Source: Dicyema japonicum
Taxonomy: Eukaryota; Animalia; Dicyemida
Length of the DNA stretch: 64,000 nt
Assembly (NCBI GenBank): GCA_011109175.1
Contig: RDEW01000069.1
Span: 102,184 to 166,183, forward strand
Reading direction: 5' to 3'
The translations under genes and the position numbers were made by a program. The notes under the pieces were generated by a model that saw only the letters and a list, made by a program, of their open reading frames with translations, had not been told where the DNA came from and did no database searches. This document shows, piece after piece, positions 13,787 to 53,899 of the stretch (position 1 is its first letter; the number at the start of each line of letters is the position of its first letter).

Positions 13787-14389
13787 TATGCTCACTTATG
13801 GTGCGCACTCCTGGTATTGCAGTGAGGAACGCGAAAAGTGCCTCACCAACTTGAGGAAGGTTCGGCGGCGGGCAATACGGTATTCTATAGGATTGTCTTA
13901 TAGAGCGCCGCTGCCTGAAAGAGGATATCCGGATTTTAAGGACCCGGAGGAAGTAATTAAAAAGATCTTAAAACTAAATTAAAGAAGGAGGTACGGGGAA
14001 GACGAAAGTGATGCCACGAAAACGCTGCCGCAAGGCGGTGAAAGGGTACTTAGTTTGGTTGTAGGAAAAAAAGTCAAGTGGAAAAAAGGTCAAGCGGAAA
14101 AAAAAGTCAAGTCCGTAAGCGGAAAAAAGGTCAAGCGGAAAAAAAAGTCAAGTTGTCTTTTTTTAATTTATATCGCATTTTTGTGATACTACTAGCATCT
14201 TTTAATTTTTAAAAATTTTTTCAATACTTGACTTTTTTTCCGCTTGACTTTTTTTCCCCTTACGGACTTGACTTTTTTTCCGCTTGACCTTTTTTCCGCT
14301 TGACTTTTTTTCCGCACTCCACTTAGTTTAGTTCTTCCCTAATTTCTAACTATTTGTTTTTGCCTAATAAAAATTTTTCCTTCCATTCC
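13787..14389 (+). mobile_element. LINE family A, 5'-truncated 3' fragment ending at an H3 5' UTR (interrupted by a MITE)
   Basis: Matches the ORF2 end (MLTYGAHSWYCSEERE...) and 3' UTR of 40371-44648; tail TTCCTTCCATTCC abuts ATCGATAATTTTCATT upstream of the H3 ATG. Confidence 0.92.
14057..14320. mobile_element. Foldback/Mutator-like MITE, 264 bp, 9-bp TSD ACTTAGTTT
   Basis: Ends GGTTGTAGGAAAAAAAGTCAAG / CTTGACTTTTTTTCCGCACTCC; TSD at 14048-14056 and 14321-14329; TIRs built of (GGAAAAAAAGTCAAG) repeats. Confidence 0.88.
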
Positions 14390-14421
14390 ATCGATAATTT
14401 TCATTCATTCATCGATAAATA

Positions 14422-14547
14422 ATGGCACGAACAAAACAAACTGCTAGAAAATCAACTGGAGCAAAAGTTCCAAGGACGAAAATGGTTCAAAAAGTGAGTA
14501 CCAAAGGATCTAAACGGGCGGCAGTTAAAGTTAGTAGCACAACACGT
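14422..14547 (+). CDS. Chimeric histone head: H3 codons 1-18 + TK + H2B codons 1-22, in frame with family-A ORF1
   Basis: [52 protein letters not shown], read directly from ORF 14422-14961. Confidence 0.93.
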
Positions 14548-19807: not shown

Positions 19808-20170
19808 TTAAGTGGATGCAGGTTTTGCGGGTTCAGCACTTTTGCGACAGATGTATCTTCCACAAGAGATTATTGCATTTTGTGTAAGTTCTTTTAATTC
19901 GTCATCGGCATTGATTGCGACAGACAGGTGACAAGGTTTGATCCTTCGCTTTGCAGCCTTGAGTGCAGTATTACCACAAAGTTCCAGCACTTCAGCACAT
20001 AGATACTCCATTACAGCTCCAACATAGATAGCAGCACCAACTGCAACTCGCATTCTGGTCTCACTTCTCAAGCATCTATGAATTCGACCAACTGGAAATT
20101 GCAAGCCTGCTCTAACTGATTTGCTTTTCGCTTTTGTACGTACTTTTCCACCTTTACCGCGAGTAGACAT
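19808..20170 (-). CDS. H2A: Histone H2A (divergent, short C-terminus)
   Basis: RAGLQFPVGRIHR, EYLCAEVLELCGN, NADDEL histone-fold motifs. Confidence 0.97.
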   Translation of the reverse strand: MSTRGKGGKVRTKAKSKSVRAGLQFPVGRIHRCLRSETRMRVAVGAAIYVGAVMEYLCAEVLELCGNTALKAAKRRIKPCHLSVAINADDELKELTQNAIISCGRYICRKSAEPAKPAST

Positions 20171-23072: not shown

Positions 23073-23440
23073 ATGGTTCAAAAAGTGAGTACTAAAGGAT
23101 CTAAACGGGCGGCAGTTAAAGTTAGCAGCACCACACGTGCCTTACGAAAAAAGAAAAAGCGATCCCAAACTATCATTTGTACATTCTGAGGATTTTGAAA
23201 TCTGTCCACACTGATTTGGGGATGTCAAAGAAAGCTATGATGGCTATGGACAGCTTTACTTTTGACATTTACGAAAAAATCAAGAACGAAGCTTGCATCT
23301 AGTCCAGCATAATAGCAAAGCTACTATCACATCGAGAGAAATTCAAACAGCAGTACGCTTGATTTTGCCTGGAGGAATTAGCAAAGCATGCTATTACCGA
23401 AGGGGCAAAGGCGGTCACCAAATATACCAATACTAAGTGA
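23073..23440 (+). CDS. H2B: Histone H2B (three 1-bp indels, probable sequencing errors)
   Basis: Near-identical to intact copies at 26555 and 31780. Confidence 0.9.
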
Positions 23441-27074: not shown

Positions 27075-27187
27075 CTTTAATATCGATTTGTGCTTCCGTG
27101 AAAAACTTTTAATATTATCGATTTGTGCTTCGGCGAAAAAGTTTTTGCGTCGTCAATTTATAAACGCCAAATTTGGAGCGCAAAGCA
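27075..27187 (+). promoter_or_regulatory. H4 promoter: tandem ATCGATTTGTGCTTC(C/G)G.GAAAAA repeat plus TTTATAAA box
   Basis: Two ~35-bp repeats, present in all units. Confidence 0.55.
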
Positions 27188-27261
27188 ATGTCAGGACGTG
27201 GTAAAGGTGGAAAAGGAGGAAAGTCAGTGCAAAGCGATTTAAAAAGATCCTGATCGATAAC
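27188..27261 (+). CDS. H4 head (codons 1-25) fused to family-A ORF1
   Basis: ...GATAAC|GTAAGAAGTTTGGAC; in frame once the single G missing in TCAG(G)TGCA is restored. Confidence 0.85.
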
Positions 27262-28878
27262 GTAAGAAGTTTGGACGATTATGAGGACATCTCACGTGTG
27301 GTCTGCGACACAGCGGCCCACGTGGTACAAGGACTCTTCGAAAATAAGCCCTCTATTGGATTATATTTTAGAGGAGTCCGAGGAGTCGAGAAGCTCAGAA
27401 GGGTCGTTCGCGACTCGATCCTTCTGTCGTTCAGAGTCAATATGGGGATCGATGGCAGGGCTGCTTTCCACACTGCAGCGGACATCCCCACACAGCAAGC
27501 GGTTGATCAAGCTGTGCCTGCACCGAGGAGGATGGAGGTTGAGAGCAAGACTCAGCCTCTTGAAATGAATCAAGGACCGAGAACCGAGGGCAGGGCTGAA
27601 TCCGTCACACAGCCGCGGTCCAACAGGCTGTGCCTGCCCTCGACGAAGGAAGACAAGAGGACCGTCTCCCAATGACTGTAGGCTGGACTACAGTAGGGAG
27701 AAAGAGGAAGTCTGCGGTTTCTGCCAAACCGCAGAACGTGCGTGATTCGGGTCCAGAAACCGCAAAGTGCCCTAAAAAGCATTTTGCAGGCTCGAATCAA
27801 TCCAGAGCGCACGTGCCGAAAGAAAAGAAGAAAGAACAGGTATTCGGAGGACTAACTACACTAGTTCGGCTAGAGGTGCCGAAGATGGGAGTGGTTAAAC
27901 TCCTAAGTGGCATAGGTACTCTGGCTACCTATGCGAAAGGAAGGATCGTCAGACGAGGAGAATCCCACTTGTTGGTGGGATTCAGAAATGACGTGGACGC
28001 CTCAGCTTTTGAAGCTGAGGTGAATAAGAAGGTTCCTTTTGGGCCCGGGGCACATAACATGTCTCGGGTCATCCCCAAGGTACACGACTCGATTGTACTA
28101 GTCTTCGGAGTCCTCTGGACTTTGTTGATGAGGATGTACTCGAGTACATCAAAAAGGACTACCCCACGGCGCACAAGATCGAGCGCTTCAAGAGTGGGAG
28201 TCAGAGATTAAGGACTCTCAAGGTCTGGATCAGGTCCGGAGCAGAAGCTGAAAGGATCTGCCTTGAGAAGTTAAAGATAGGTTACTTTAGATTTGGTGTG
28301 GCCCGAGAGCGACCGGTAGCAATCCAGTGCTACAGATGCCAGGGATTCGGCCACACCAGCTCCCGCTGCACTTAATAAAGAGAAGTGCCTAAATTGCGGG
28401 GGTCCACATTCGCGGAAGGCTTGCCAAACAAGTGGCAAGTCTCTCAAGTGCGTGAACTGTGGCGCAAAAGGACACAGGGCGAGCCATACCAAGTGCCCCC
28501 TGTATCAGGAGGCGACGGAGAAGGTACCACAGGGGAGAAGGCAGGCGCCCTCCTCTGGAATGGTCAGTGATGTAGGCACTATCCATCGGATGGTGAGTAA
28601 CTATTGCAATGCCACTGGGGCTTCGCTCCAAACGGCACTTAGGGATATCGCGTTATCTCATAGGTTAAATAATGCGTCGAAGGGATGCTCAACATCGTCT
28701 TCGAAACAGGAGGACTTTAGAATATGACGAAGACTTTTATAAAACGAAGGAGGCACGGGGAAGACGAATGTGATGGCACGAAAACGCTGCCGCAAGGCGG
28801 TGAAAGGGCCTTTAGTTAGTTCTTCCCTAACTTAACATTTGTTTTTTTGCCTAATAAAGATTTTTCCGTTTTTCTTCC
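27262..28878 (+). mobile_element. LINE family A, ORF1-only short form, in H4
   Basis: ORF1 ends ..SKQEDFRI*, then the shared 3' UTR, AATAAA and TTCC tail; H4 restarts at 28879. Confidence 0.92.
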
Positions 28879-28886
28879 GCAAATCA

Positions 28887-29194
28887 ATGTCTGGACGTGG
28901 AAAGGTGGAAAAGGAGGAAAGTCAGGTGCAAAGCGATTTAAAAAGATCCTGATCGATAACATTCAGGGGATCACAAAGCCTGCAATTAGGAGACTGTGTC
29001 GTAGAGGAGGTGTGAGAAGGATCTCAGGCAAAATTTATGAGGAGACAAGATGTGTCCTCAGGATCTTTATTGAGAGAACTATAAGAGATTGCATTTCCTA
29101 TTGTGAACACGCTAAAAGAAAAACTGTGATTGCTATGGATGTGGTCTATGCCTTGAAGAGACAAGGGAGAACAATATATGGATTTGGTGGATGA
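28887..29194 (+). CDS. H4: Histone H4 (restarts after the element; 1-bp indel near the start)
   Basis: Full H4 sequence from ATG to TGA. Confidence 0.9.
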
Positions 29195-29571: not shown

Positions 29572-29979
29572 ATGGCACGAACAAAACAAACTGCTAGAAA
29601 ATCAACTGGAGCAAAAGTTCCAAGGAAACAGCTTTCTGCTAAATCTGCACGCAAGTCAGTTTCTCAATTGGGTGGTGTAAAGAAACCACATCGCTTTCGT
29701 CCTGGTGTCGTGGCAATGAGGGAGATCAGAAGATATCAAAAGAGTACTGACCTTCTATTGCGAAAGACACCGTTCCAAAGGGTTGTTAGAGAAGCAGCAC
29801 AATTTATGAAGACAGATTTACGTTTCCAATCATCGGCCATTGTTGCTCTTCAGGAGGCTGCAGAGACTTATTTGGTCGGGATTTTGAGATAGTATTTGTG
29901 TGCAATACATGGAAAACGAGTAACAATAATGCCACAGGATATGCACCTAGCAAGGAGAATTCGTGGTGAAAAAACATAA
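29572..29979 (+). CDS. H3: Histone H3 (small indels, probable errors)
   Basis: Matches other copies except short deletions near 29880-29895. Confidence 0.9.
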
Positions 29980-31779: not shown

Positions 31780-32148
31780 ATGGTTCAAAAAGTTAGCACA
31801 AAAGGATCTAAACGGGCTGCAGTTAAAGTTAGTAGCACAACACGTGCCTTACGAAAAAAGAAAAAGCGATCCCAAAACTATCATTTGTACATTCTGAGGA
31901 TTTTGAAATCTGTCCACACTGATTTGGGGATGTCAAAGAAAGCTATGATGGCTATGGACAGCTTTACTTTTGACATTTACGAAAAAATCAAGAACGAAGC
32001 TTGCAATTTAGTTCAGCATAATAGCAAAGCTACTATCACATCAAGAGAAATTCAAACAGCAGTACGCTTGATTTTGCCTGGAGAATTGGCAAAGCATGCT
32101 ATTACCGAAGGGGCAAAGGCGGTCACCAAGTATACCAATACTAAGTGA
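31780..32148 (+). CDS. H2B: Histone H2B
   Basis: Intact 122-aa ORF. Confidence 0.97.
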
Positions 32149-32442
32149 TTTTTACTTGATATAATAAAGAAAACTTGTTTTCTAACATTTTTTTCCTTAC
32201 ATAAAAATAGCCCACGTGTCATAATCTTAACAAAAGAACGTTTTTTATTAAATTTAACGTAATAAGAACGTTTTTTATTATTTTTAACGCTATTTAAAAA
32301 GTCCGTTTTAGTGTGTTTTCCAATTTTCACTTTAATATCGATTTGTGCTTCCGTGAAAAACTTTTAATATTATCGATTTGTGCTTCGGCGAAAAACTTTT
32401 TGCGTCGTCAATTTATAAACGCCAAATTTGGAGCGCAAAGCA

Positions 32443-32532
32443 ATGTCTGGACGTGGTAAAGGTGGAAAAGGAGGAAAGTCAGGTGCAAAGCGATTCAAAA
32501 AGATCCTGATCGATAACATTCAGGGATCACAA
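32443..32532 (+). CDS. H4 head (~30 codons) fused to family-A ORF1
   Basis: Junction ATCACAA|CACATTCCGTACGA as at 47666; in frame after restoring one G in CAGG(G)GATC. Confidence 0.85.
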
Positions 32533-34267
32533 CACATTCCGTACGAAATCTTGAGGATTATCAGGACATCTCACGTGTGGTCTGTGATACAGCGGCCCAC
32601 GTGGTACAAGGACTCTTCGAAAAATAAGCCCTCTATTGGATTATATTTTAGAGGAGTCCGAGGAGTAGAGAAGCTCAGAAGGGTCGTTCGCGACTCGATC
32701 CTTCTGTCGTTCAGAGTCAATATGGGGATCGATGGCAGGGCTGCTTTCCACACTGCAGCGGACATCCCACACAGCAAGCGGTTGATCAAGCTGTGCCTGC
32801 ACCAAGGAGGATGGAGGTTGAGAGCAAGACTCAGCCTCCTGTAATGGATCAAAGGACCGAGGAAAAACATCCCAGCAAAGCTAGCGGTGAACAAGCTGTG
32901 CCTGGGACAAGGAGGATGGAGGTTGAGGGCAAGACTCAGCCTCTTGAAATGAATCAAGGACGAGAACCGAGGGCAAGGGCTGAATCCGTCACACAGCCAA
33001 GCGGTCCAAACAGGCTGTGCCTGCCCTCGACGAAGTGCGACAAGAGGACCATCTCCCAATGACTGTAGGCTGGACTACAGTAGGGAGAAAGAGGAAGTCT
33101 GCGGTTTCTGCCAAACCGCAGAACGTGCGTGATTCGGGTCCAGAAAACCGCAAAGTGCCCTAAAAGCATTTTTGCAGGCTCGAATCAATCCAGAGCGCAC
33201 GTGCCGAAAGAAAAGAAGAAAGAACAGGTATTCGGAGGACTAACTACACTAGTTCGGCTAGAGGTGCCGAAGATGGGAGTGGTTAAACTCCTAAGTGGCA
33301 TAGGTACTCTGGCTACCTATGCGAAAGAAGGATCGTCAGACGAGGAGAATCCCACTTGTTGGTGGGATTCAGAAATGACGTGGACGCCTCAGCTTTTGAA
33401 GCTGAGGTGAATAAGAAGGTTCCTTTTGGGCCCGGGGCACATAACATGTCTCGGGTCATCCCCAAGGTACACGACTCGATTGTACTAGTCTTCCGGAGTC
33501 CCTCTGGACTTTGTTGATGAGGATGTACTCGGAGTACATCAAAAGGACTACCCCACGGCGCACAAGATCGAGCGCTTCAAGAGTGGAGTCAGAGACTAAG
33601 GACTCTCAAGGTCTGGATCAGGTCCGGAGCGGAAGCTGAGAGGATCTGCCTTGAGAAGTTTAAGATAGGTTACTTTAGATTTGGTGTGGCCCGAGAGCGA
33701 CCGGTAGCAATCCAGTGCTACAGATGCCAGGGATTCGGCCACACCAGCTCCCGCTGCACTTATAAAGAGAAGTGCCTAAATTGCGGGGTCCACATTCGCG
33801 AAGGCTTGCCAAACAAGTGGCAAGTCTCTTCAAGTGCGTGAACTGTGGCGCAGAAGGACACAGGGCGAGCCATACCAAGTGCCCCCCTGTATCAGGAGGC
33901 GACGGAGAAGGTACCACAGGGGAGAAGGCAGGCGCCCTCCTCTGGAATGGCCAGTGATGTAGGCACTATCCATCGGATGGTGAGTAACTATTGCAATGCC
34001 ACTGGGGCTTCGCTCCAAACGGCACTTAGGGATATCGCGTTTATCTCATAGGTTAAATAATGCGTCGAAGGGATGCTCAACAATCGTCTTCGAAACAGGA
34101 GGACTTTAGAATATGACGAAGACTTTTATAAAACGAAGGAGGCACGGGGAAGACGAATGTGATGGCACGAAACGCTGCCGCAAGGCGGTGAAAGGGCCTT
34201 TAGTTAGTTCTTCCCTGATTACTTAACATTTGTTTTTTGCCTAATAAAGATTTTTCCGTTCCGATCC
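32533..34267 (+). mobile_element. LINE family A, ORF1-only short form, in H4
   Basis: Same structure as 27262-28878; tail TTCCGTTCCGATCC. Confidence 0.92.
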
Positions 34268-34276
34268 CGCAAAGCA

Positions 34277-34585
34277 ATGTCAGGACGTGGGAAAGGTGGA
34301 AAAGGAGGAAAGTCAGGTGCAAAGCGATTCAAAAAGATCCTGATCGATAACATTCAGGGGATCACAAAGCCTGCAATTAGGAGACTGTGTCGTAGAGGAG
34401 GTGTGAGAAGGATCTCAGGCAAAATTTATGAGGAGACAAGATGTGTCCTCAGGATCTTTATTGAGAGAACTATAAGAGATTGCATTTCCTATTGTGAACA
34501 CGCTAAAAGAAAAACTGTGATTGCTATGGATGTGGTCTATGCCTTGAAGAGACAAGGGAGAACAATATATGGATTTGGTGGATGA
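34277..34585 (+). CDS. H4: Histone H4 (intact, downstream of element)
   Basis: 102-aa ORF. Confidence 0.97.
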
Positions 34586-38460: not shown

Positions 38461-38541
38461 AAATTTTTGATTTAGACTATGGTTCAAAAAGTTAGCACTA
38501 AAGGATCTAAACGGGCTGCAGTTAAAGTTAGTAGCACAACA
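38461..38541 (+). other. Ectopic H2B 5' UTR plus first 21 codons placed just after the H3 TATA-like box
   Basis: ...TATTAATACA|AAATTTTTGATTTAGACTATGGTTCAAAAAG matches H2B at 37143-37220. Confidence 0.92.
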
Positions 38542-40302
38542 AGTTCCGTAAGAAGTTTGGACGATTACCAGGACATCTCACGTGTGGTCTGTGATACAGC
38601 GGCCCACGTGGTAAATGGACTCTTCGAAAATAAGCCCTCTATTGGATTATATTTTAGAGGAGTCCGAGGAGTCGAGAAGCTCAGAAGGGTCGTTCGCGAC
38701 TCGATCCTTCTGTCGTTCAGAGTCAATATGGGGATCGATGGCAGGGCTGCTTTCCACGCTGCAGCGGACATCCCCACACAGCAAGCGGTTGATCAAGCTG
38801 TGCCTGCACCGAGGAGGATGGAGGTTGAGAGCAAGACTCAGCCTCCTATAATGGATCAAGGGACATGGAAAAAGACCAGGCCTACTTCATACACATCAGA
38901 GGACATCCCCACACAGCAAGCGGTTGAACAAGCTGTGCCTGCACCGAGGAGGATGGAGGTTGAGAGCAAGACTCAGCCTCTTGAAATGAATCAAGGACCG
39001 AGAACCGAGGGCAGGGCTGAATCCGTCACACAGCCAGCGGTCCAACAGGCTGTGCCTGCCCTCGACGAAGTGCGACAAGAGGACCATCTCCCAATGACTG
39101 TAGGCTGGACTACAGTAGGGAGAAAGAGGAAGTCTGCGGTTTCTGCCAAACCGCAGAACGTGCGTGATTCGGGTCCAGAAACCGCAAAGTGCCCTAAAAA
39201 GCATTTTGCAGGCTCGAATCAATCCAGAGCGCACGTGCCGAAAGAAAAGAAGAAAGAACAGGTATTCGGAGGACTAACTACACTAGTTCGGCTAGAGGTG
39301 CCGAAGATGGGAGTGGTTAAACTCCTAAGTGGCATAGGTACACTGGCTACCTATGCGAAAGGAAGGATCGTCAGACGAGGAGAATCCCACTTGTTGGTGG
39401 GATTCAGAAATGACGTGGACGCCTCAGCTTTTGAAGCTGAGGTGAATAAGAAGGTTCCTTTTGGGCCCGGGGCACATAACATGTCTCGGGTCATCCCCAA
39501 GGTACACGACTCGATTGTACTAGTCTTCGGAGTCCCTCTGGACTTTGTTGATGAGGATGTACTCGAGTACATCAAAAAGGACTACCCACGGCGCACAAGA
39601 TCGAGCGCTTCAAGAGTGGGAGTCAGAGACTAAGGACTCTCAAGGTCTGGATCAGGTCCGGAGCAGAAGCTGAAAGGATCTGCCTTGAGAAGTTAAAGAT
39701 AGGTTACTTTAGATTTGGTGTGGCCCGAGAGCGACCGGTAGCAATCCAGTGCTACAGATGCCAGGGATTCGGCCACACCAGCTCCCGCTGCACTTATAAA
39801 GAGAAGTGCCTAAATTGCGGGGGTCCACATTCGCGGAAGACTTGCCAAACAAGTGGCAAGTCTCTCAAGTGCGTGAACTGTGGCGCGGAGGGACACAGGG
39901 CGAGCCATACCAAGTGCCCCCTGTATCAGGAGGCGACGGAGAAGGTACCACAGGGGAGAAGGCAGGCGCCCTCCTCTGGAGTGGTCAGTGATGTAGGCAC
40001 TATCCATCGGATGGTGAGTAACTATTGCAATGCCACTGGGGCTTCGCTCCAAACGGCACTTAGGGATATAGCGTTATCTCATAGGTTAAATAATGCGTCG
40101 AAGGGATGCTCAACATCGTCTTCGGAACAGGAGGACTTTAGAATATGACGAAGACTTTTATAAAACGAAGGAGGCACGGGGAAGACGAATGTGATGGCAC
40201 GAAAACGCTGCCGCAAGGCGGTGAAAGGGCCTTTAGTTAGTTCTTCCCTGATTACTTAACATTTGTTTTTTTGCCTAATAAAGATTTTTCCGTTCCGTTC
40301 CG
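38542..40302 (+). mobile_element. LINE family A, ORF1-only short form, H2B-headed
   Basis: ORF 38479-39633 fused in frame; tail TTCCGTTCCGTTCCG. Confidence 0.92.
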
Positions 40303-40309
40303 TTAGACT

Positions 40310-41938
40310 ATGGTTCAAAAAGTTAGCACAAAAGGATCTAAACGGGCTGCAGTTAAAGTTAGTAGCACAAAAAGTTCCGTAAGAAGTTTGGACGATTACC
40401 AGGACATCTCACGTGTGGTCTGTGATACAGCGGCCCACGTGGTAAATGGACTCTTCGAAAATAAGCCCTCTATTGGATTATATTTTAGAGGAGTCCGAGG
40501 AGTCGAGAAGCTCAGAAGGGTCGTTCGCGACTCGATCCTTCTGTCCTTCCGAATAAACATGGGGATCGATGGCAGGGCTGCTTTCCACGCTGCAGCGGAC
40601 ATCCCCACACAGCAAGCGGTTGATCAAGCTGTGCCTGCACCGAGGAGGATGGAGGTTGAGAGCAAGACTCAGCCTCCTATAATGGATCAAGGGAAATGGA
40701 AAAAGACCAGGCCTACTTCATACACATCAGAGGACATCCCCGCACAGCTAGCGGTTGAACAAGCTGTGCCTGGGACGAGGAGGATGGAGGTTGAGAGCAA
40801 GACTCAGCCTCTTGAAATGAATCAAGGACCGAGAACAGAGGGCAGGGTTGAATCCGTCACACAGCCAGCGGTCCAACAGGCTGTGCCTGCCCTCGACGAA
40901 GGAAAACAAGAGGACCGTCTCCCGATGACTGTAGGCTGGACTACAGTAGGGAGAAAGAGGAAGTCTGCGGTTTCTGCCAAACCGCAGAACGTGCGTGATT
41001 CGGGTCCAGAAACCGCAAAGTGCCCTAAAAAGCATTTTGCAGGCTCGAATCAATCCAGAGCGCACGTGCCGAAAGAAAAGAAGAAAGAACAGGTATTCGG
41101 AGGGCTAACTACACTAGTTCGGCTAGAGGTGCCGAAGATGGGAGTGGTTAAACTCCTAAGTGGCATAAGTAGTCTGGCTACCTATGCGAAAGGAAGGGTC
41201 GTCAGACGAGGAGAATCCCACTTGTTGGTGGGATTCAGAAATGACGTGGACGCCTCAGCTTTTGAAGCTGAGGTGAATAAGAAGGTTCCTTTGGGCCCGG
41301 GGCACATAACATGTCTCGGGGTCATCCCCAAGGTACACGACTCGATTGTACTAGTCTTCGGAGTCCCTCTGGACTTTGTTGATGAGGATGTACTCGAGTA
41401 CATCAAAAAGGACTACCCCACGGCGCACAAGATCGAGCGCTTCAAGAGTGGGAGTCAGAGACTAAGGACTCTCAAGGTCTGGATCAGGTCCGGAGCAGAA
41501 GCTGAGAGGATCTGCCTTGAGAAGTTAAAGATAGGTTACTTTAGATTTGGTGTGGCCCGAGAGCGACCGGTAGCAATCCAGTGCTACAGATGCCAGGGAT
41601 TCGGCCACACCAGCTCCCGCTGCACTTATAAAGAGAAGTGCCTAAATTGCGGGGGTCCACATTCACGGAAGGCCTGTCAATCCAGAGTCAGGTCTCTCAA
41701 GTGCGTGAACTGTGGCTTGGAGGGACACAGGGCGAGCCATACCAAGTGCCCCCTGTATCAGGAGGCGACGGAGAAGGTACCACAGGGGAGAAGGCAGGCG
41801 CCCTCCTCTGGAGTGGTCAGTGATGTAAGCGCTGTCCACCGCGTGGTAAGTCGATACTGTAGCAGCACAGGTTCAACGTTCCCTAATGCGCTTAGGGACA
41901 TTGCGCTCTGCGATAGGAAGGTAAGTGCGGCGAAGTGA
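40310..41938 (+). CDS. H2B-head::ORF1 fusion protein (542 aa, gag-like, three CCHC zinc knuckles)
   Basis: [32 protein letters not shown]...CYRCQGFGHTSSRC, CLNCGGPHSRKAC, CVNCGLEGHRASHTKC. Confidence 0.93.
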   Translation: MVQKVSTKGSKRAAVKVSSTKSSVRSLDDYQDISRVVCDTAAHVVNGLFENKPSIGLYFRGVRGVEKLRRVVRDSILLSFRINMGIDGRAAFHAAADIPTQQAVDQAVPAPRRMEVESKTQPPIMDQGKWKKTRPTSYTSEDIPAQLAVEQAVPGTRRMEVESKTQPLEMNQGPRTEGRVESVTQPAVQQAVPALDEGKQEDRLPMTVGWTTVGRKRKSAVSAKPQNVRDSGPETAKCPKKHFAGSNQSRAHVPKEKKKEQVFGGLTTLVRLEVPKMGVVKLLSGISSLATYAKGRVVRRGESHLLVGFRNDVDASAFEAEVNKKVPLGPGHITCLGVIPKVHDSIVLVFGVPLDFVDEDVLEYIKKDYPTAHKIERFKSGSQRLRTLKVWIRSGAEAERICLEKLKIGYFRFGVARERPVAIQCYRCQGFGHTSSRCTYKEKCLNCGGPHSRKACQSRVRSLKCVNCGLEGHRASHTKCPLYQEATEKVPQGRRQAPSSGVVSDVSAVHRVVSRYCSSTGSTFPNALRDIALCDRKVSAAK

Positions 41939-44519
41939 TGTTACGCATCATTTCAGTTAATGTTAGGTCCCTCCGGAGAAGAAGGAAGGCCATCGAGGAT
42001 CTTCTGGACTCTTTGGAGGTGGACATCTTGGTCCTTAACGAGACCAAGAGTAAGGATACGGCTGCTGCAGGCTTTAAAGGCTATACTAGTTGTCATCTCT
42101 TGTGGAATGACACACATAGAGGTTCGGGCACTAGTATCTATTGGAGGACGAGTCTAGCAGCAGTCGTCCAAGGTATTGCAAATTGTCCTCATTGCGAGCT
42201 AATATTATTACGAATCAGGTTATCTGGCTTTAGCGTTGTTATAGGGGCAATGTATGCCAAGCAGTTGTGGTTGTGTAAGGACCACATTAAAACTGTATTT
42301 GACATTCATCCCCATTGCGTTATTTTTGGTGATCTGAATGCTAAGCATTCAGATTTTGGCTGTTTTGTTAATAATAGGGCTGGATCAGCACTCCGGGAAT
42401 TAGCTTGGAATCTTGGGCTCTCAGTCACTACATCGACGGACCCCAATCACAAAGATACACGAGGAGGAGAGGACTTCTTGGGTATGGCCGTAGCCTCCCC
42501 TTCATTAATTGGTATGCTCTCTGTACCTCGTGTTCTTAGGGACATCGGAAGCGATCACCGTCCCCTACTCACTGAGCTTCACGAACCTGTTCGACCTCAG
42601 GCCCCAATTGGCTATGACTTGGGCTCTGGCACTTGGGATAACCTGGAGTCGTTCATGGATAGAAAACTCCCTTCTCTCAAAGGGCAAGTTTGTAGTGAAG
42701 CGGACGTGGAGGAATTGGATGCCACCCTGGGTGGTATCCTCGAGGAATACATGCGGACTAACTTCCGGTTACGTCCGCAAGGTGGAGGCTCCGCACGAAT
42801 TCCAGGCCTGATTTTAAGTAAGATAACACTTAGAAAGAGGTACCTGCGGTTCAAAGCGAGGAGCACGTATGAAGAGAACCGGATCTTCTACCAGAAGAAG
42901 GTAAACACCTTACGAAGGGAAATCCGGAAGGCGCTTGTTGACTATCAGAGCAACAAATGGAGGAGGGCCTGCGAGAGGGTGAACCCCGCATGGCCGGACT
43001 TCTGGAGTCAGCTGAAGCGCCTGTCGGGCAGAGGGGAAGAGTCATCTGCGCGTACCCTGTGTCGTGCGGACGGTTCTAAAACCTCTGACCCGACTGAAAT
43101 AGCGAGCATCTTTGCAGGTAGCTTTAGGGCAGTTACTGCAGTTCGACCAGAGAACTTTGTCGAGTTAACAGCTCGACAAAGTATAGAGGACGTCATCTCT
43201 GCGGAGAGACGGAAGTTGAGCCACTCTCGGGAGATCCCGAAGGTGGCATGCATCACCGAGGAGGAGGTCCGGGCCGCGATAAGTAAATCGAAGAACAACG
43301 CACCGGGCCAAGACAAGATCCCCATGGCCCTTTTCAAGAAAGGACCTGGAAGTCTCGTGAACACCTTGGTAAGATTGTACAACGGTAGTACAGGTTGGGT
43401 TACGTTCCTAGGCGTTGGAAGGAAGCGGAACTGGTTTTTGTAAGGAAACCAGGAAAACCTCCTGAAGACCCTAGTAGCTACCGCCCTATAAGCTTGTTAC
43501 CTGCCGTTGCTAAAATCTTAGAGAGAGTGATACACCAGAGGTTAACCCAGGAATGCATAATAAAAGACACCCTCTCGGACCTTCAGATGGGATTCCGTGA
43601 GGGGCGTTCCTGTGGGGACTGCCTCTGGAGGTTGAGCTCTCAGATTCGTGAAAGGAGCAAGAAGCAATGCACAGCCGCGTTGTTCCTGGATGTGGAGAGG
43701 GCGTTCGACTCGGTCTGGCATGACGGCCTCCGTTGCGCCCTCGCAGAAGGAGGAATATCTCTGGAGCTAAGGAGCTGGTTATCAAGCTTCTTAGAGGATC
43801 GGATGAACTATGTAAGGCATAAAGGTTGCCGATCTAGTTTGTTTAGATCTAACCGGGGAGTTCCACAAGGGTCGGTTTTGAGCCCCACCCTTTTCAACGT
43901 TTACATGTCTACACTTCCCCACCCAGCCAATGTGAGGACGGAGATGGCTATCTATGCGGACGACATAGTACTCTGGGATCACTCGTGGAAACCAGATGTA
44001 GCGTGTCGGAGGATTCAAGTAGCTGTCAATGAAATCATACGCTGGTGTGGGAGCAGAGGACTTAGGCTGAGACCTGAGAAATGTAAGTTATTAGTTTTTG
44101 GCCGCCCTAAGCGGTCTAATAATTTAATACCTAGAGTAACCATCTATGGGGTACCTATAGAGGTTACTGGGCGGACGAGCTACCTTGGAGTGACATTCAA
44201 CTCCAAGTGTAGTTTCCAGGAGCACACCGCCCTCGTTAAGAGGCGGGCTGTGCAAAGATTAGGAGCGTTGAGGGCTTTTCAGCTGAGTCGCGATGCCTGG
44301 GCCAAAGTGTTCAACGCCATGGTGCTGCCTATGCTCACCTATGGTGCGCACTCCTGGTATTGTAGTGAGGAACGCGAAAAGTGCCTCACCAACTTGAGGA
44401 AGGTTCGGCGGCGGGCAATACGGTATTCTATAGGATTGTCTTATAGAGCGCCGCTGCCCGAAAGAGGATATCCGATTTCAGGACCCGAGGAAGTGATTAA
44501 AAAGATCTTAAAAAATTAA
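41938..44519 (+). CDS. ORF2: AP endonuclease + reverse transcriptase (Jockey/I-group-like; no RNase H seen); 1-bp indels near 43390 and 44475
   Basis: ISVNVRSL, LVLNETK, GDLNAKH, IGSDHRP; YRPISLL, QMGFREGRSC, DVERAFDSVWH, GVPQGSVLSPTLFN, YADD, YLGVTF. Starts by a TGATG overlap with the ORF1 stop. Confidence 0.95.
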
Positions 44520-44557
44520 AGAAGGAGGCACGGGGAAGACGAATGGATGCACGAAAA

Positions 44558-44575
44558 CGCTGCCGCAAGGCGGTG
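44558..44575 (+). other. 3' UTR hairpin of family A (CGCTGCC-GCAA-GGCGGTG, GNRA loop)
   Basis: 7-bp stem with two G-U pairs; conserved in nearly all family-A 3' ends. Confidence 0.6.
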
Positions 44576-44675
44576 AAAGGGCCTTAGTTAGTTCTTCCCT
44601 ATTACTTAACATTTGTTTTTTGCCTAATAAAGATTTTTCCTTCCTTTCAATCGATAATTTTCATTTTCATTAATA

Positions 44676-45086
44676 ATGGCACGAACAAAACAAACTGCTA
44701 GAAAATCAACTGGAGCAAAAGTTCCAAGGAAACAGCTTTCTGCTAAATCTGCACGCAAGTCAGTTTCTCAATTGGGTGGTGTAAAGAAACCACATCGCTT
44801 TCGTCCTGGTGTCGTGGCAATGAGGGAGATCAGAAGATATCAAAAGAGTACTGACCTTCTATTGCGAAAGACACCGTTCCAAAGGGTTGTTAGAGAAGCA
44901 GCACAATTTATGAAGACAGATTTACGTTTCCAATCATCGGCCATTGTTGCTCTTCAGGAGGCTGCAGAGACTTATTTGGTCGGGATTTTTGAGGATAGTA
45001 ATTTGTGTGCAATACATGGAAAACGAGTAACAATAATGCCACAGGATATGCACCTAGCAAGGAGAATTCGTGGTGAAAAAACATAA
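44676..45086 (+). CDS. H3: Histone H3 (intact, downstream of element)
   Basis: 136-aa ORF. Confidence 0.97.
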
Positions 45087-47285: not shown

Positions 47286-47575
47286 TTTTTACTTGATATA
47301 ATAAAGAAAACTTGTTTTCTAACATTTTTCTTACATAAAAATAGCTCACGTGTCATAGTCTTAACAAAAGAATGTTTTTTTATTATTTTAGCGCAATAAG
47401 AACGTTTTTTATTATTTTTAACGCTATTTAAAAAGTCCGTTTTAGTGTGTTTTCCAATTTTCACTTTAATATCGATTTGTGCTTCCGTGAAAAACTTTTA
47501 ATATTATCGATTTGTGCTTCGGCGAAAAATTTTTGCGTCGTCAATTTATAAACGCCAAATTTGGAGCGCAAAGCA

Positions 47576-47666
47576 ATGTCAGGACGTGGTAAAGGTGGAA
47601 AAGGAGGAAAGTCAGGTGCAAAGCGATTCAAAAAGATCCTGATCGATAACATTCAGGGGATCACAA
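47576..47666 (+). CDS. H4 head (30 codons) fused in frame to family-A ORF1
   Basis: ...[24 protein letters not shown] in ORF 47561-47854. Confidence 0.92.
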
Positions 47667-49404
47667 CACATTCCGTACGAAATCTTGAGGATTATGAGGA
47701 CATCTCACGTGTGGTCTGCGACACAGCGGCCCACGTGGTACAAGGACTCTTCGAAAATAAGCCCTCTATTGGATTATATTTTAGAGGAGTCCGAGGAGTA
47801 GAGAAGCTCAGAAGGGTCGTTTCGCGACTCGATCCTTCTGTCATTCAGAGTTAATATGGGGATCGATGGCAGGGCTGCTTTCCACACTGCAGCGGACATC
47901 CCCACACAGCAAGCGGTTGATCAAGCTGTGCCTGCACCGAGGAGGAGGATGGAGGTTGAGAGCAAGACTCAGCCTCCTGTAATGGATCCAAGGACCGAGG
48001 AAAACATCCCAGCACAGCTAGCGGTTGAACAAGCTGTGCCTGGGACGAGGAGGATGGATGTTGAGAGCAAGACTCAGCCTCTTGAAAAGAATCAAGGACC
48101 GAGAACCGAGGGCAGGGCTGAATCCGTCACACAACCAGCGGTCCAACAGGCTGTGCCTGCCCTCGACGAAGTGCGACAAGAGGACCATCTCCCGATGACT
48201 GTAGGCTGGACTACAGTAGGGAGAAAGAGGAAGTCTGCGGTTTCTGCCAAACCGCAGAACGTGCGTGATTCGGGTCCAGAAACCGCAAAGTGCCCTAAAA
48301 GCATTTTTGCAGGCTCGAATCAATCCAGAGCGCACGTGCCGAAAGAAAAGAAGAAAGAACAGGTATTCGGAGGACTAACTACACTAGTTCGGCTAGAGGT
48401 GCCGAAGATGGGAGTGGTTAAACTCCTAAGTGGCATAGGTACACTGGCTACCTATGCGAAAGAAGGATCGTCAGACGAGGAGAATCCCACTTGTTGGTGG
48501 GATTCAGAAATGACGTGGACGCCTCAGCTTTTGAAGCTGAGGTGAATAAGAAGGTTCCTTTTGGGCCCGGGGCACATAACATGTCTCGGGTCATCCCCAA
48601 GGTACACGACTCGATTGTACTAGTCTTCGGAGTCCCTCTGGACTTTGTTGATGAGGATGTACTCGAGTACATCAAAAAGGACTACCCCACGGCGCACAAG
48701 ATCGAGCGCTTCAAGAGTGGGAGTCAGAGACTAAGGACTCTCAAGGTCTGGATCAGGTCCGGAGCGGAAGCTGAGAGGATCTGCCTTGAGAAGTTAAAGA
48801 TAGGTTACTTTAGATTTGGTGTGGCCCGAGAGCGACCGGTAGCAATCCAGTGCTACAGATGCCAGGGATTCGGCCACACCAGCTCCCGCTGCACTTATAA
48901 AGAGAAGTGCCTAAATTGCGGGGGTCCACATTCGCGGAAGGCTTGCCAAACAAGTGGCAAGTCTCTCAAATGCGTGAACTGTGGCGCAGAAGGACACAGG
49001 GCGAGCCATACCAAGTGCCCCCTGTATCAGGAGGCGACGGAGAAGGTACCACAGGGGAGAAGGCAGGCGCCCTCCTCTGGAATGGTCAGTGATGTAGGCA
49101 CTATCCATCGGATGGTGAGTAACTATTGCAATGCCACTGGGGCTTCGCTCCAAACGGCACTTAGGGATATCGCGTTATCTCATAGGTTAAATAATGCGTC
49201 GAAGGGATGCTCAACATCGTCTTCGAAACAGGAGGACTTTAGAATATGACGAAGACTTTTATAAAACGAAGGAGGCACGGGGAAGACGAATGTGATGGCA
49301 CGAAAAACGCTGCGCAAGGCGGTGAAAGGGCCTTTAGTTAGTTCTTCCCTGATTACTTAACATTTGTTTTTTGCCTAATAAAGATTTTTCCATTCCATTT
49401 TTCC
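47667..49404 (+). mobile_element. LINE family A, ORF1-only short form, in H4
   Basis: Tail TTCCATTCCATTTTTCC joins GCGAAAAA, 55 nt upstream of the H4 ATG. Confidence 0.92.
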
Positions 49405-49459
49405 GCGAAAAACCTTTTGCGTCGTCAATTTATAAACGCCAAATTTGGAGCGCAAAGCA

Positions 49460-49767
49460 ATGTCTGGACGTGGTAAAGGTGGAAAAGGAGGAAAGTCAGG
49501 TGCAAAGCGATTCAAAAAGATCCTGATCGATAACATTCAGGGGATCACAAAGCCTGCAATTAGGAGACTGTGTCGTAGAGGAGGTGTGAGAAGGATCTCA
49601 GGAAAATTTATGAGGAGACAAGATGTGTCCTCAGGATCTTTATTGAGAGAACTATAAGAGATTGCATTTCCTATTGTGAACACGCTAAAAGAAAAACTGT
49701 GATTGCTATGGATGTGGTCTATGCCTTGAAGAGACAAGGGAGAACAATATATGGATTTGGTGGATGA
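49460..49767 (+). CDS. H4: Histone H4 (1-bp indel)
   Basis: Full H4 sequence downstream of the element. Confidence 0.9.
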
Positions 49768-52728: not shown

Positions 52729-53019
52729 TTTTTACTTGATATAATAAAGAAAACTTGTTTTCTAACATTTTTTTTTACATAAAAATAGCCCACGTGTCAT
52801 AATCTTAACAAAAGAATGTTTTTTATTAATTTTAACGCAATAAGAACGTTTTTTATTAATTTTAACGCTATTTAAAAAGTTCGTTTTAGTGTGTTTTCCA
52901 ATTTTCACTTTAATATCGATTTGTGCTTCCGTGAAAAACTTTTAATATTATCGATTTGTGCTTCGGCGAAAAATTTTTGCGTCGTCAATTTATAAACGCC
53001 AAATTTGGAGCGCAAAGCA

Positions 53020-53383
53020 ATGTCTGGACGTGGTAAAGGTGGAAAAGGAGGAAAGTCAGGTGCAAAGCGATTCAAAAAGATCCTGATCGATAACATTCAG
53101 GGGATCACAAGTAACGAAGTTTGGAGATTATCAGGACATCTCACGTGTGGTCTGTGATACAGCGGCCACGTGGTAAAGGACTCTTCGAAAATAAGCCTCT
53201 ATTGGATTATATTTTAGAGGAGTCCGAGGAGTAGAGAAGCTCAGAAGGGTCGTTCGCGACTCGATCCTTCTGTCGTTCAGAGTCAATATGGGGATCGATG
53301 GCAGGGCTGCTTTCCACACTGCAGCGGACATCCCCACACAGCAAGCGGTTGATCAAGCTGTGCCTGCACAGGAGGATGGAGGT
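53020..53383 (+). mobile_element. H4 head (53020-53110) plus 5' end of a family-A copy running into a gap
   Basis: ATCACAA|GTAACGAAGTTTGGAGATTATCAGGAC; low-quality sequence. Confidence 0.85.
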
Positions 53384-53899
53384 NNNNNNNNNNNNNNNNN
53401 NNNNNNNNNNNNNNNNNNNNNNNNNNNNNNNNNNNNNNNNNNNNNNNNNNNNNNNNNNNNNNNNNNNNNNNNNNNNNNNNNNNNNNNNNNNNNNNNNNNN
53501 NNNNNNNNNNNNNNNNNNNNNNNNNNNNNNNNNNNNNNNNNNNNNNNNNNNNNNNNNNNNNNNNNNNNNNNNNNNNNNNNNNNNNNNNNNNNNNNNNNNN
53601 NNNNNNNNNNNNNNNNNNNNNNNNNNNNNNNNNNNNNNNNNNNNNNNNNNNNNNNNNNNNNNNNNNNNNNNNNNNNNNNNNNNNNNNNNNNNNNNNNNNN
53701 NNNNNNNNNNNNNNNNNNNNNNNNNNNNNNNNNNNNNNNNNNNNNNNNNNNNNNNNNNNNNNNNNNNNNNNNNNNNNNNNNNNNNNNNNNNNNNNNNNNN
53801 NNNNNNNNNNNNNNNNNNNNNNNNNNNNNNNNNNNNNNNNNNNNNNNNNNNNNNNNNNNNNNNNNNNNNNNNNNNNNNNNNNNNNNNNNNNNNNNNNNN
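53384..53899. other. Assembly gap (N run)
   Basis: Run of N. Confidence 1.

Follow-up and report, generated by a model that had tools for sequence, protein, structure and literature searches.

In a tandem histone array of Dicyema japonicum three H4 genes are split in such a way that a stretch of H4 sequence lies on both sides of an ORF1-only LINE derivative of 1.6-1.7 kb and is followed by a full-length H4 gene. We propose, tentatively and with a little less than even confidence, that the duplication results from a single retrotransposition of a histone-headed LINE RNA, and that it is neither a plain TSD from a staggered cut nor a segment brought in purely by the donor. The array is found at positions 13,000-54,000 of the window (the whole stretch of 64,000 nucleotides which was analysed), has the unit order H4, H3, H2A (minus strand), H2B, and is infested by an APE-type LINE.

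The H4 insertions

The H4 stretch upstream of each element is called the head. The features of the four insertions A to D are the following.

27125-27187, plus strand: H4 promoter before head A, with the proximal copy of a 16-nt motif at 27125-27140 and the TATA box at 27159-27164
27188 (ATG) to codon 25, plus strand: head A, H4 homology ending at 27261; a 1-nt deletion at +39 as assembled
27179-27261 (left) and 28878-28960 (right), plus strand: duplication A, H4 -9 to +75, 84 bp
27262-28877, plus strand: element A, an ORF1-only non-autonomous LINE derivative with an AATAAA signal and a short T/C-rich repeat tail
28887-29194, plus strand: downstream H4 gene A, full length, with a 1-nt deletion after codon 5 which gives a frameshift as assembled
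32434-32532 (left) and 34268-34367 (right), plus strand: duplication B, H4 -9 to +91, 100 bp; head ATG at 32443
32533-34267, plus strand: element B, with a 5' junction identical to that of C and of dispersed copies on scaffolds C35 and C224
34277-34585, plus strand: downstream H4 gene B (with the right copy, 34268-34585), intact, 102 aa, no TATA box
47522-47666 (left) and 49405-49550 (right), plus strand: duplication C, H4 -55 to +91, 146 bp; head ATG at 47576, reading in frame into ORF1
47667-49404, plus strand: element C
49405-49767, plus strand: right copy C and the H4 gene from 49460; TATA box kept at 49431-49436, upstream motifs lost, a 1-nt deletion giving a frameshift as assembled
53011-53383, plus strand: head D (ATG 53020, H4 to +91), then 273 nt from the start of element D, which is cut by a gap of 516 N

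The first-pass annotation had stated that the H4 gene restarts behind the element at 28887, 34277 and 49460, and these restarts are indeed three duplications of 84, 100 and 146 bp. Each duplication ends on the right exactly at the head/element junction and on the left at the tail junction. Element A is in frame with its H4 head except for the 1-nt deletion, and the right copy of duplication A abuts the element tail directly and has no TATA box. The elements had been described as complete copies; they are ORF1-only non-autonomous derivatives, and the full-length element is the one at 40302-44648. The histone ORF behind the element had likewise been called complete. This is correct for H4 at 34277 and for H3 at 44676 and incorrect for H4 at 28887 and 49460, where a 1-nt deletion shifts the frame as assembled. 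The related statement that the resident ORF is left intact can be kept for the gene body and is unproven for the reading frames.

The junctions differ between the insertions. Each of A, B and C has a tail of its own, and their 3' junctions are at two positions. In A and B both 3' junctions are at -9, yet 5 of the 9 tail bases differ, and C retains 46 bp which are absent from B. Starting from the C type, a 46-bp deletion at a 2-nt microhomology would yield the junction at -9 of A and B. At the other end there are three different 5' junctions; those of A and D are each unique in the genome, and deletions of 8-17 nt would turn the B type into either. Among the 3' junctions there are two cases of H4 -9, whose tails differ, and three of H3 -39, in which two types of tail are found; these counts may be inflated by unit duplication. 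H4 -55 is seen as a 3' junction as well. No convincing sequence motif for a nick site is shared across the junctions.

Organization and assembly of the array

The genome searched consists of 67,542,437 bases in 377 pieces. The published assembly has 67.5 Mb in 377 scaffolds and is a hybrid of Illumina and PacBio RS II data in which the products of two assemblers were merged and haplotypes reduced, with a heterozygosity of 1.24% and a gap rate of 4.1% (PMC6736024). The array is incompletely assembled: the 516-N gap at 53384-53899 cuts element D, and the sequence picks up in the middle of an H3 gene. Frameshifts of 1 nt, as assembled, are found in 6 of the 22 histone genes of the array (H2B at 23073, 37162 and 52362, H3 at 29572, H4 at 28887 and 49460), genes with native promoters included; all six H2A genes are open. 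In head A and in the two H4 genes the 1-nt indels are near 27226, 28900 and 49556. The frameshifts may be long-read indel errors or real decay. To read them as pseudogenisation is unsafe, considering how many genes are affected, native-promoter ones among them, and the use of PacBio RS II data.

Such an assembly invites the suspicion that repeat collapse or haplotype merging has falsely joined element-bearing and element-free H4 units, and the merging of two assemblers, the haplotype reduction at this heterozygosity, the gap and the frameshifts all speak in that direction. Every head/element and tail/gene junction is nevertheless continuous, distinct variants recur both in the window and on other scaffolds, and mis-joining does not make junctions this specific. 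We regard an artefact of this kind as highly improbable.

Insertions A, B, C and D sit in colinear higher-order units of about 5.4 kb which are about 97% alike, and in the units with A, B and C colinearity extends over 4-8 kb, with 96-97% identity, the element included. Much of the repetition is thus explained by amplification of units. The divergence between whole array units is 1.7% substitutions plus 0.6-0.7% indel events. Since A to D are found in units as similar as these, there may have been only one or two insertion events, which weakens any argument from recurrence; the array would fit either one insertion followed by array dynamics or two or three insertions.

The colinearity is the starting point for an alternative to a single retrotransposition. 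It postulates that a few simple insertions at different points of H4, one in the coding region, which would have produced the head fusion, and one just before the ATG, were combined by unequal crossing-over or gene conversion between the elements of adjacent units, and that amplification of the unit of about 5.4 kb followed. Recombination would then be the origin of the duplication, and differences between head and gene would be ordinary differences between paralogues. The elements are in fact block-wise mosaics; B, for example, matches the C35 copies at 100% for its first 100 nt or so and A at 99-100% thereafter, which means that recombination is active in the array. The derivation of the -9 junction from the C type also fits this alternative, as does the finding (see below) that head/gene differences are at array background and at shared polymorphic sites. 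The parental forms, however, are absent genome-wide: 0 of 11 H4 bodies is found headless behind a tail, and nowhere in the genome is an H4 promoter joined to an element with a head other than H4. Several coordinated recombinations would be needed to produce three tails, two 3' positions and three 5' junctions, and the H3 locus has the same repeated-head design. We consider this account unlikely, if one to be taken seriously.

As a side observation, short duplications and tail-like repeats (such as the 29 nt or so preceding 46917) make the H2B leaders upstream of the ATGs at 31780, 46917 and 52362 different from unit to unit. These variants look like scars of earlier LINE insertions which have since been lost.

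The element and its short partners

The full-length member of the family in the window is the following.

40302-44648, plus strand: element E2, with ORF1, APE and RT

Pfam domains identify CCHC knuckles of ORF1 on 40310-41938 (PF15288 and PF00098), the APE domain on 41935-43443 (PF03372/PF14529) and the RT domain on 43395-44519 (PF00078). The RT has 1714 relatives at E<=1e-10, with jockey-type annotations among its relatives. About 30 element 3' ends with short tandem-repeat tails are found at unrelated sites, and truncated copies are also present. By every feature tested the element is an APE-type LINE. It is not strictly site-specific, most 3' ends being in non-histone DNA on many scaffolds. 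The closest relative of the RT is a protein annotated as Octopus sinensis with 54% identity, in keeping with an animal that parasitizes the kidneys of octopuses; this match could be dicyemid contamination of the host assembly or the result of horizontal transfer between host and parasite.

The ORF1-only partners A, B, C and E1 are 1.6-1.8 kb long. They have the 5' 1.3 kb and the last 130 nt in common with the full-length element and about 140 nt of their own. This private stretch is found at 28599-28738 in A and at the equivalent place in B, C, E1 and a copy on scaffold C46 (L009/L053). The C46 copy is a short element with an H2A head at a non-histone site, and the short elements are therefore a mobile non-autonomous partner and not plain deletions. 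A tandem repeat of about 105 bp inside ORF1 (32762-32964 and equivalents) varies in copy number, A having one unit fewer than B.

On scaffolds C314 (L071), C257 (L072) and C24 (L078) LINE 3' ends directly abut H4 starts or decayed H4 genes. Some of these ends belong to a family with an RT identity of only 27%. The three cases may go back to earlier insertions of this kind or to 3' transductions.

Histone heads at other loci and in the H3 promoter

In the B/C type of junction H4 +91 is followed by what is left of an H2B head, and the two meet where H4 and the H2B head share a 5-nt microhomology. C35 has two full-length copies with this junction and C224 has one. All of these dispersed copies lie in non-histone DNA, and no histone gene is found in the 14 kb of C35 examined. 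The dispersed H4 heads start at H4 -5 to +2, which is 24-31 nt past the TATA box and about where the 5' ends of an RNA would be expected. Other dispersed heads are from H2B on C2 and from H2A on C46. No flanking duplication above chance was found at the dispersed copies on C35, C46 and C2, where short TSDs are ambiguous because the tails are repeats.

The H3 locus provides a control case for these observations.

38461-44648, plus strand: two H2B-led elements in tandem within the H3 promoter, E1 (38461-40301) being ORF1-only and E2 (40302-44648) full length
44676-45086, plus strand: the H3 gene after this insert, open
14322-14481, plus strand: element tail, H3 -39 to +54 and an H2B-led element, the H3 counterpart of the repeated head segment

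E1 and E2 are tandem insertions at the same nucleotide. The 5' junction of the insert is at H3 -49 and the 3' junction at -39, giving a target deletion of 9 bp. The H3 gene at 44676 had been listed with the H4 genes as a case of duplication, and this has to be withdrawn: there is neither a duplication nor an upstream H3 head at 38461-44648, the insert is led by H2B, and the 9 bp of the target are missing. The dispersed copies and this deletion together mean that long duplications are found only where head and target are the same gene.

As in a transduction, the same upstream host segment is found on copies at unrelated loci, and an H2B leader is found inside the H3 promoter. These sequences support the view that a histone head can arrive with the donor RNA, which was the view of the first-pass annotation. 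The support does not extend to copy A. The junction of A is unique, and the rare variant Phe18 TTT is confined, within the array, to head A and the gene behind it. For A an H4 head brought by the donor is therefore not supported, and the shared TTT points, if anything, to a local origin of the head. Heads B and C, inside the array, have the usual alleles of the resident H4 genes and not those of the dispersed heads, which counts against the reading that we favour.

The observations on copy A would also suit a true long TSD made afresh. This rival hypothesizes a nick near the start site, a break in the top strand 84-146 bp downstream, and joining of the 5' end of the cDNA by microhomology, so that both copies would be derived from the target and the new head would be a by-product. 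Besides the unique junctions of A and D and the distribution of Phe18 TTT, it can point to the head junctions of four histone genes, which all lie 54-91 nt into the coding region with heads often swapped or stacked, and to a precedent: the LINE family R9 of bdelloid rotifers is cited as having, in 28S rDNA, a TSD of exceptional length (Gladyshev and Arkhipova 2009, as cited in PMC13580325). An intrinsic long stagger as a general property of the enzyme was, however, rejected, as the copies on C35, C46 and C2 and the pair in the H3 promoter have no long duplication. The B/C junction is common to the dispersed copies and thus inherited, not new, and the derivation of junctions A and D from the B type by small deletions also goes against fresh origin. 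A long TSD made afresh is in our judgement rather improbable.

Base differences between heads and genes

The donor origin of the heads had been argued from silent differences between head and downstream gene. The alternation of TCA and TCT at Ser2 is exactly as it had been listed, and the question is what it can tell. The stretch from -9 to +74 which is shared by all copies has four variable sites only. A head differs from its own downstream gene by 2 (A), 2 (B) and 1 (C) substitutions, which makes 5 in total against 4.75 expected for random pairs, and most of these differences are at sites that are polymorphic among other H4 copies. A unit divergence of 1.7% plus indels predicts 1.4-2.5 differences in 84-146 bp; the head/gene differences are thus at background. 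Variable sites are so few, and other H4 copies are so much the equals of a head's own gene in nearness to it, that phasing heads and downstream genes by SNPs has no power as a test of origin. Heads with no special nearness to their own gene would also result from concerted evolution, recombination or haplotype merging. A donor-borne head would account for the differences, but so would haplotype merging or an old TSD which concerted evolution has reshuffled. Variants private to the downstream genes are -3 T and Phe18 TTT in gene A and, in gene B, Ser2 TCA together with Gly6 GGG.

A model for the duplication

The reading that we tentatively favour, a single retrotransposition of a histone-headed RNA, would proceed as follows. 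An element inside a histone gene would be transcribed from the histone promoter, giving an RNA in which the leader and the first 18-30 codons are fused in frame to ORF1. The ORF1-only partner would be mobilised in trans by the APE-type LINE. On integration into the cognate histone gene the bottom strand would be nicked just before the ATG (at H4 -9 or -55) and the RNA reverse-transcribed from its tail. The cDNA of the head would then pair with the target's top strand, through microhomology in founder events and along the whole head later. The top strand would be cut at the end of the pairing (+75 or +91) and prime second-strand synthesis, followed by fill-in. In this way the sequence which starts at the first nick and stops where the head ends would come to stand on both sides of the element. 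The upstream copy would be seamlessly joined to the resident promoter, which would drive the element, and the downstream copy would be a full-length gene severed from most or all of its promoter.

The architecture, the inheritance of the head junction and the absence of long duplications where head and target differ are observed; in this scheme we infer the transcription from the histone promoter, the pairing step and the order of the cuts. Insertion C is informative about the pairing. Its upstream copy keeps -55 to -10, which is beyond the starts of the dispersed heads; blunt joining of a head-bearing cDNA therefore cannot explain C, whereas pairing with fill-in can. The founding H4 junction, too, lies at the 5-nt microhomology with the H2B head, as would be expected if the cDNA annealed to the target. 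The same step has been proposed for R2, where the cDNA of co-transcribed upstream target sequence pairs with the top strand, and the proposal has been extended to TSD-making elements (PMC6895275). In the '4-way junction' model of R2 the cleavage of the second strand follows from the pairing, and the 5' junctions come out seamless (PMC6895275).

Should the repeat arise through pairing of head cDNA, the present system would be a natural counterpart of the '4-way junction' model which uses Pol II, a protein-coding target and an APE-type element; direct in vivo evidence for that model is scarce. Pairing of head cDNA would explain why heads of H2A, H2B, H3 and H4, single and stacked, are found in one element family. 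The system is also testable, as synonymous tags in the head would show the strand of origin of each copy.

A bolder version gives the histone head of the RNA the role of a guide. The head would pair with the cognate 5' region at an open promoter or in an R-loop; the upstream edge, close to the transcription start and about 20 nt past the TATA box, would be where the bottom strand is nicked, and the top strand would be nicked at the downstream edge, so that the duplicated interval equals the head. We think this version quite improbable. If it were true, the LINE would colonise a Pol II gene family in an RNA-guided and gene-sparing manner, taking the promoter and start codon and having a full-length gene rebuilt behind it.

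Relation to other elements

By analogy the element would seem to work most like R2 and R1, with their co-transcribed target sequence, and like L1 with its 5' transduction. As with R2 and R1, the element RNA begins, in our proposal, with target-gene sequence as a result of transcription from a host promoter, and tandem insertions at the same nucleotide occur here too (E1/E2). R2 differs in having an RLE endonuclease, a single ORF and strict site specificity, whereas the element described here is of the APE type and has many dispersed copies. The retained rRNA piece of R2 is non-coding and about 27 nt long; the head is protein-coding and in frame with ORF1. Unlike in R2, the retained piece would lie downstream of the first nick, which would give the repeat of 84-146 bp. 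The full-length gene behind the element is a further difference.

R9 resembles the present case in being a LINE in a multicopy host gene which is flanked by a duplication of about a hundred bases, its TSD reportedly being 126 bp long. It belongs to the R2 clade, has an RLE endonuclease and makes a long TSD with every insertion, whereas here an APE is found and long repeats occur only in cognate histone targets. The likeness to L1 5' transduction is that upstream host sequence has been moved to new loci (the C35 and C224 copies), and that to HAL1 is that ORF1-only copies (A, B, C, E1 and the one on C46) would be mobilised in trans. L1 transductions are incidental and non-coding; here the piece gives ORF1 its start codon and N-terminus and recurs for H2A, H2B, H3 and H4.

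In a literature search of incomplete coverage we found no report of LINEs in the starts of histone genes, in dicyemids or elsewhere, and histones are not mentioned in the D. japonicum genome paper (PMC6736024). A LINE that lives in a multicopy gene usually ruins the copy into which it inserts. In the present case the whole gene body is kept downstream, and the element gains a promoter, a start codon and an N-terminal tail.

Promoters of the downstream genes

The 16-nt motif GTGCTTCSGYGAAAAA has 15 matches between 23641 and 52973 against 0 expected. The matches are only upstream of H4, twice per gene, and of H3, once per gene, and the motif is probably a shared histone promoter element. In all three downstream H4 genes it is either missing or reduced to half, so that none of them has a whole promoter. 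Two of the three have also lost the TATA box, which is retained only behind C; that only the copy at 49405 keeps it was correctly seen before. The insertions were at the same time thought to be of low cost. As the downstream genes lose conserved promoter motifs, two of them the TATA box as well, this is doubtful, and the insertions are probably not harmless.

The 3' junction of C lies within the proximal H4 copy of the 16-nt motif, and the element tail has a microhomology of 3-5 nt there. LINE tails abut three histone genes 19-20 nt past a TATA-like box (H4 -9, H3 -39, H2A -13), a spacing rule drawn from three genes, with the boxes of H3 and H2A assigned by eye, and broken by copy C at H4 -55. 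The sites of abutment are 28878 and 34268 (H4), 44649 and 14391 (H3), and on the minus strand upstream of the ATG at 20170 (H2A); at H2A the tail is that of a second LINE family, which has another tail repeat. Insertion at a fixed distance from a core promoter element is also a feature of Ty3 and of the Dictyostelium TRE elements. These target Pol III genes, at or close to their start sites, through contacts with TFIIIB/TFIIIC, whereas Pol II histone promoters are used here.

A second tandem cluster of H4 genes is found on scaffold C20 (L074-L076), with three genes at a period of about 3.2 kb. Its DNA is 82% identical to that of the array genes and its protein nearly identical, with one K/R difference in the 50 N-terminal residues read. 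No element matches were seen in this cluster, and it may buffer the loss of array genes.
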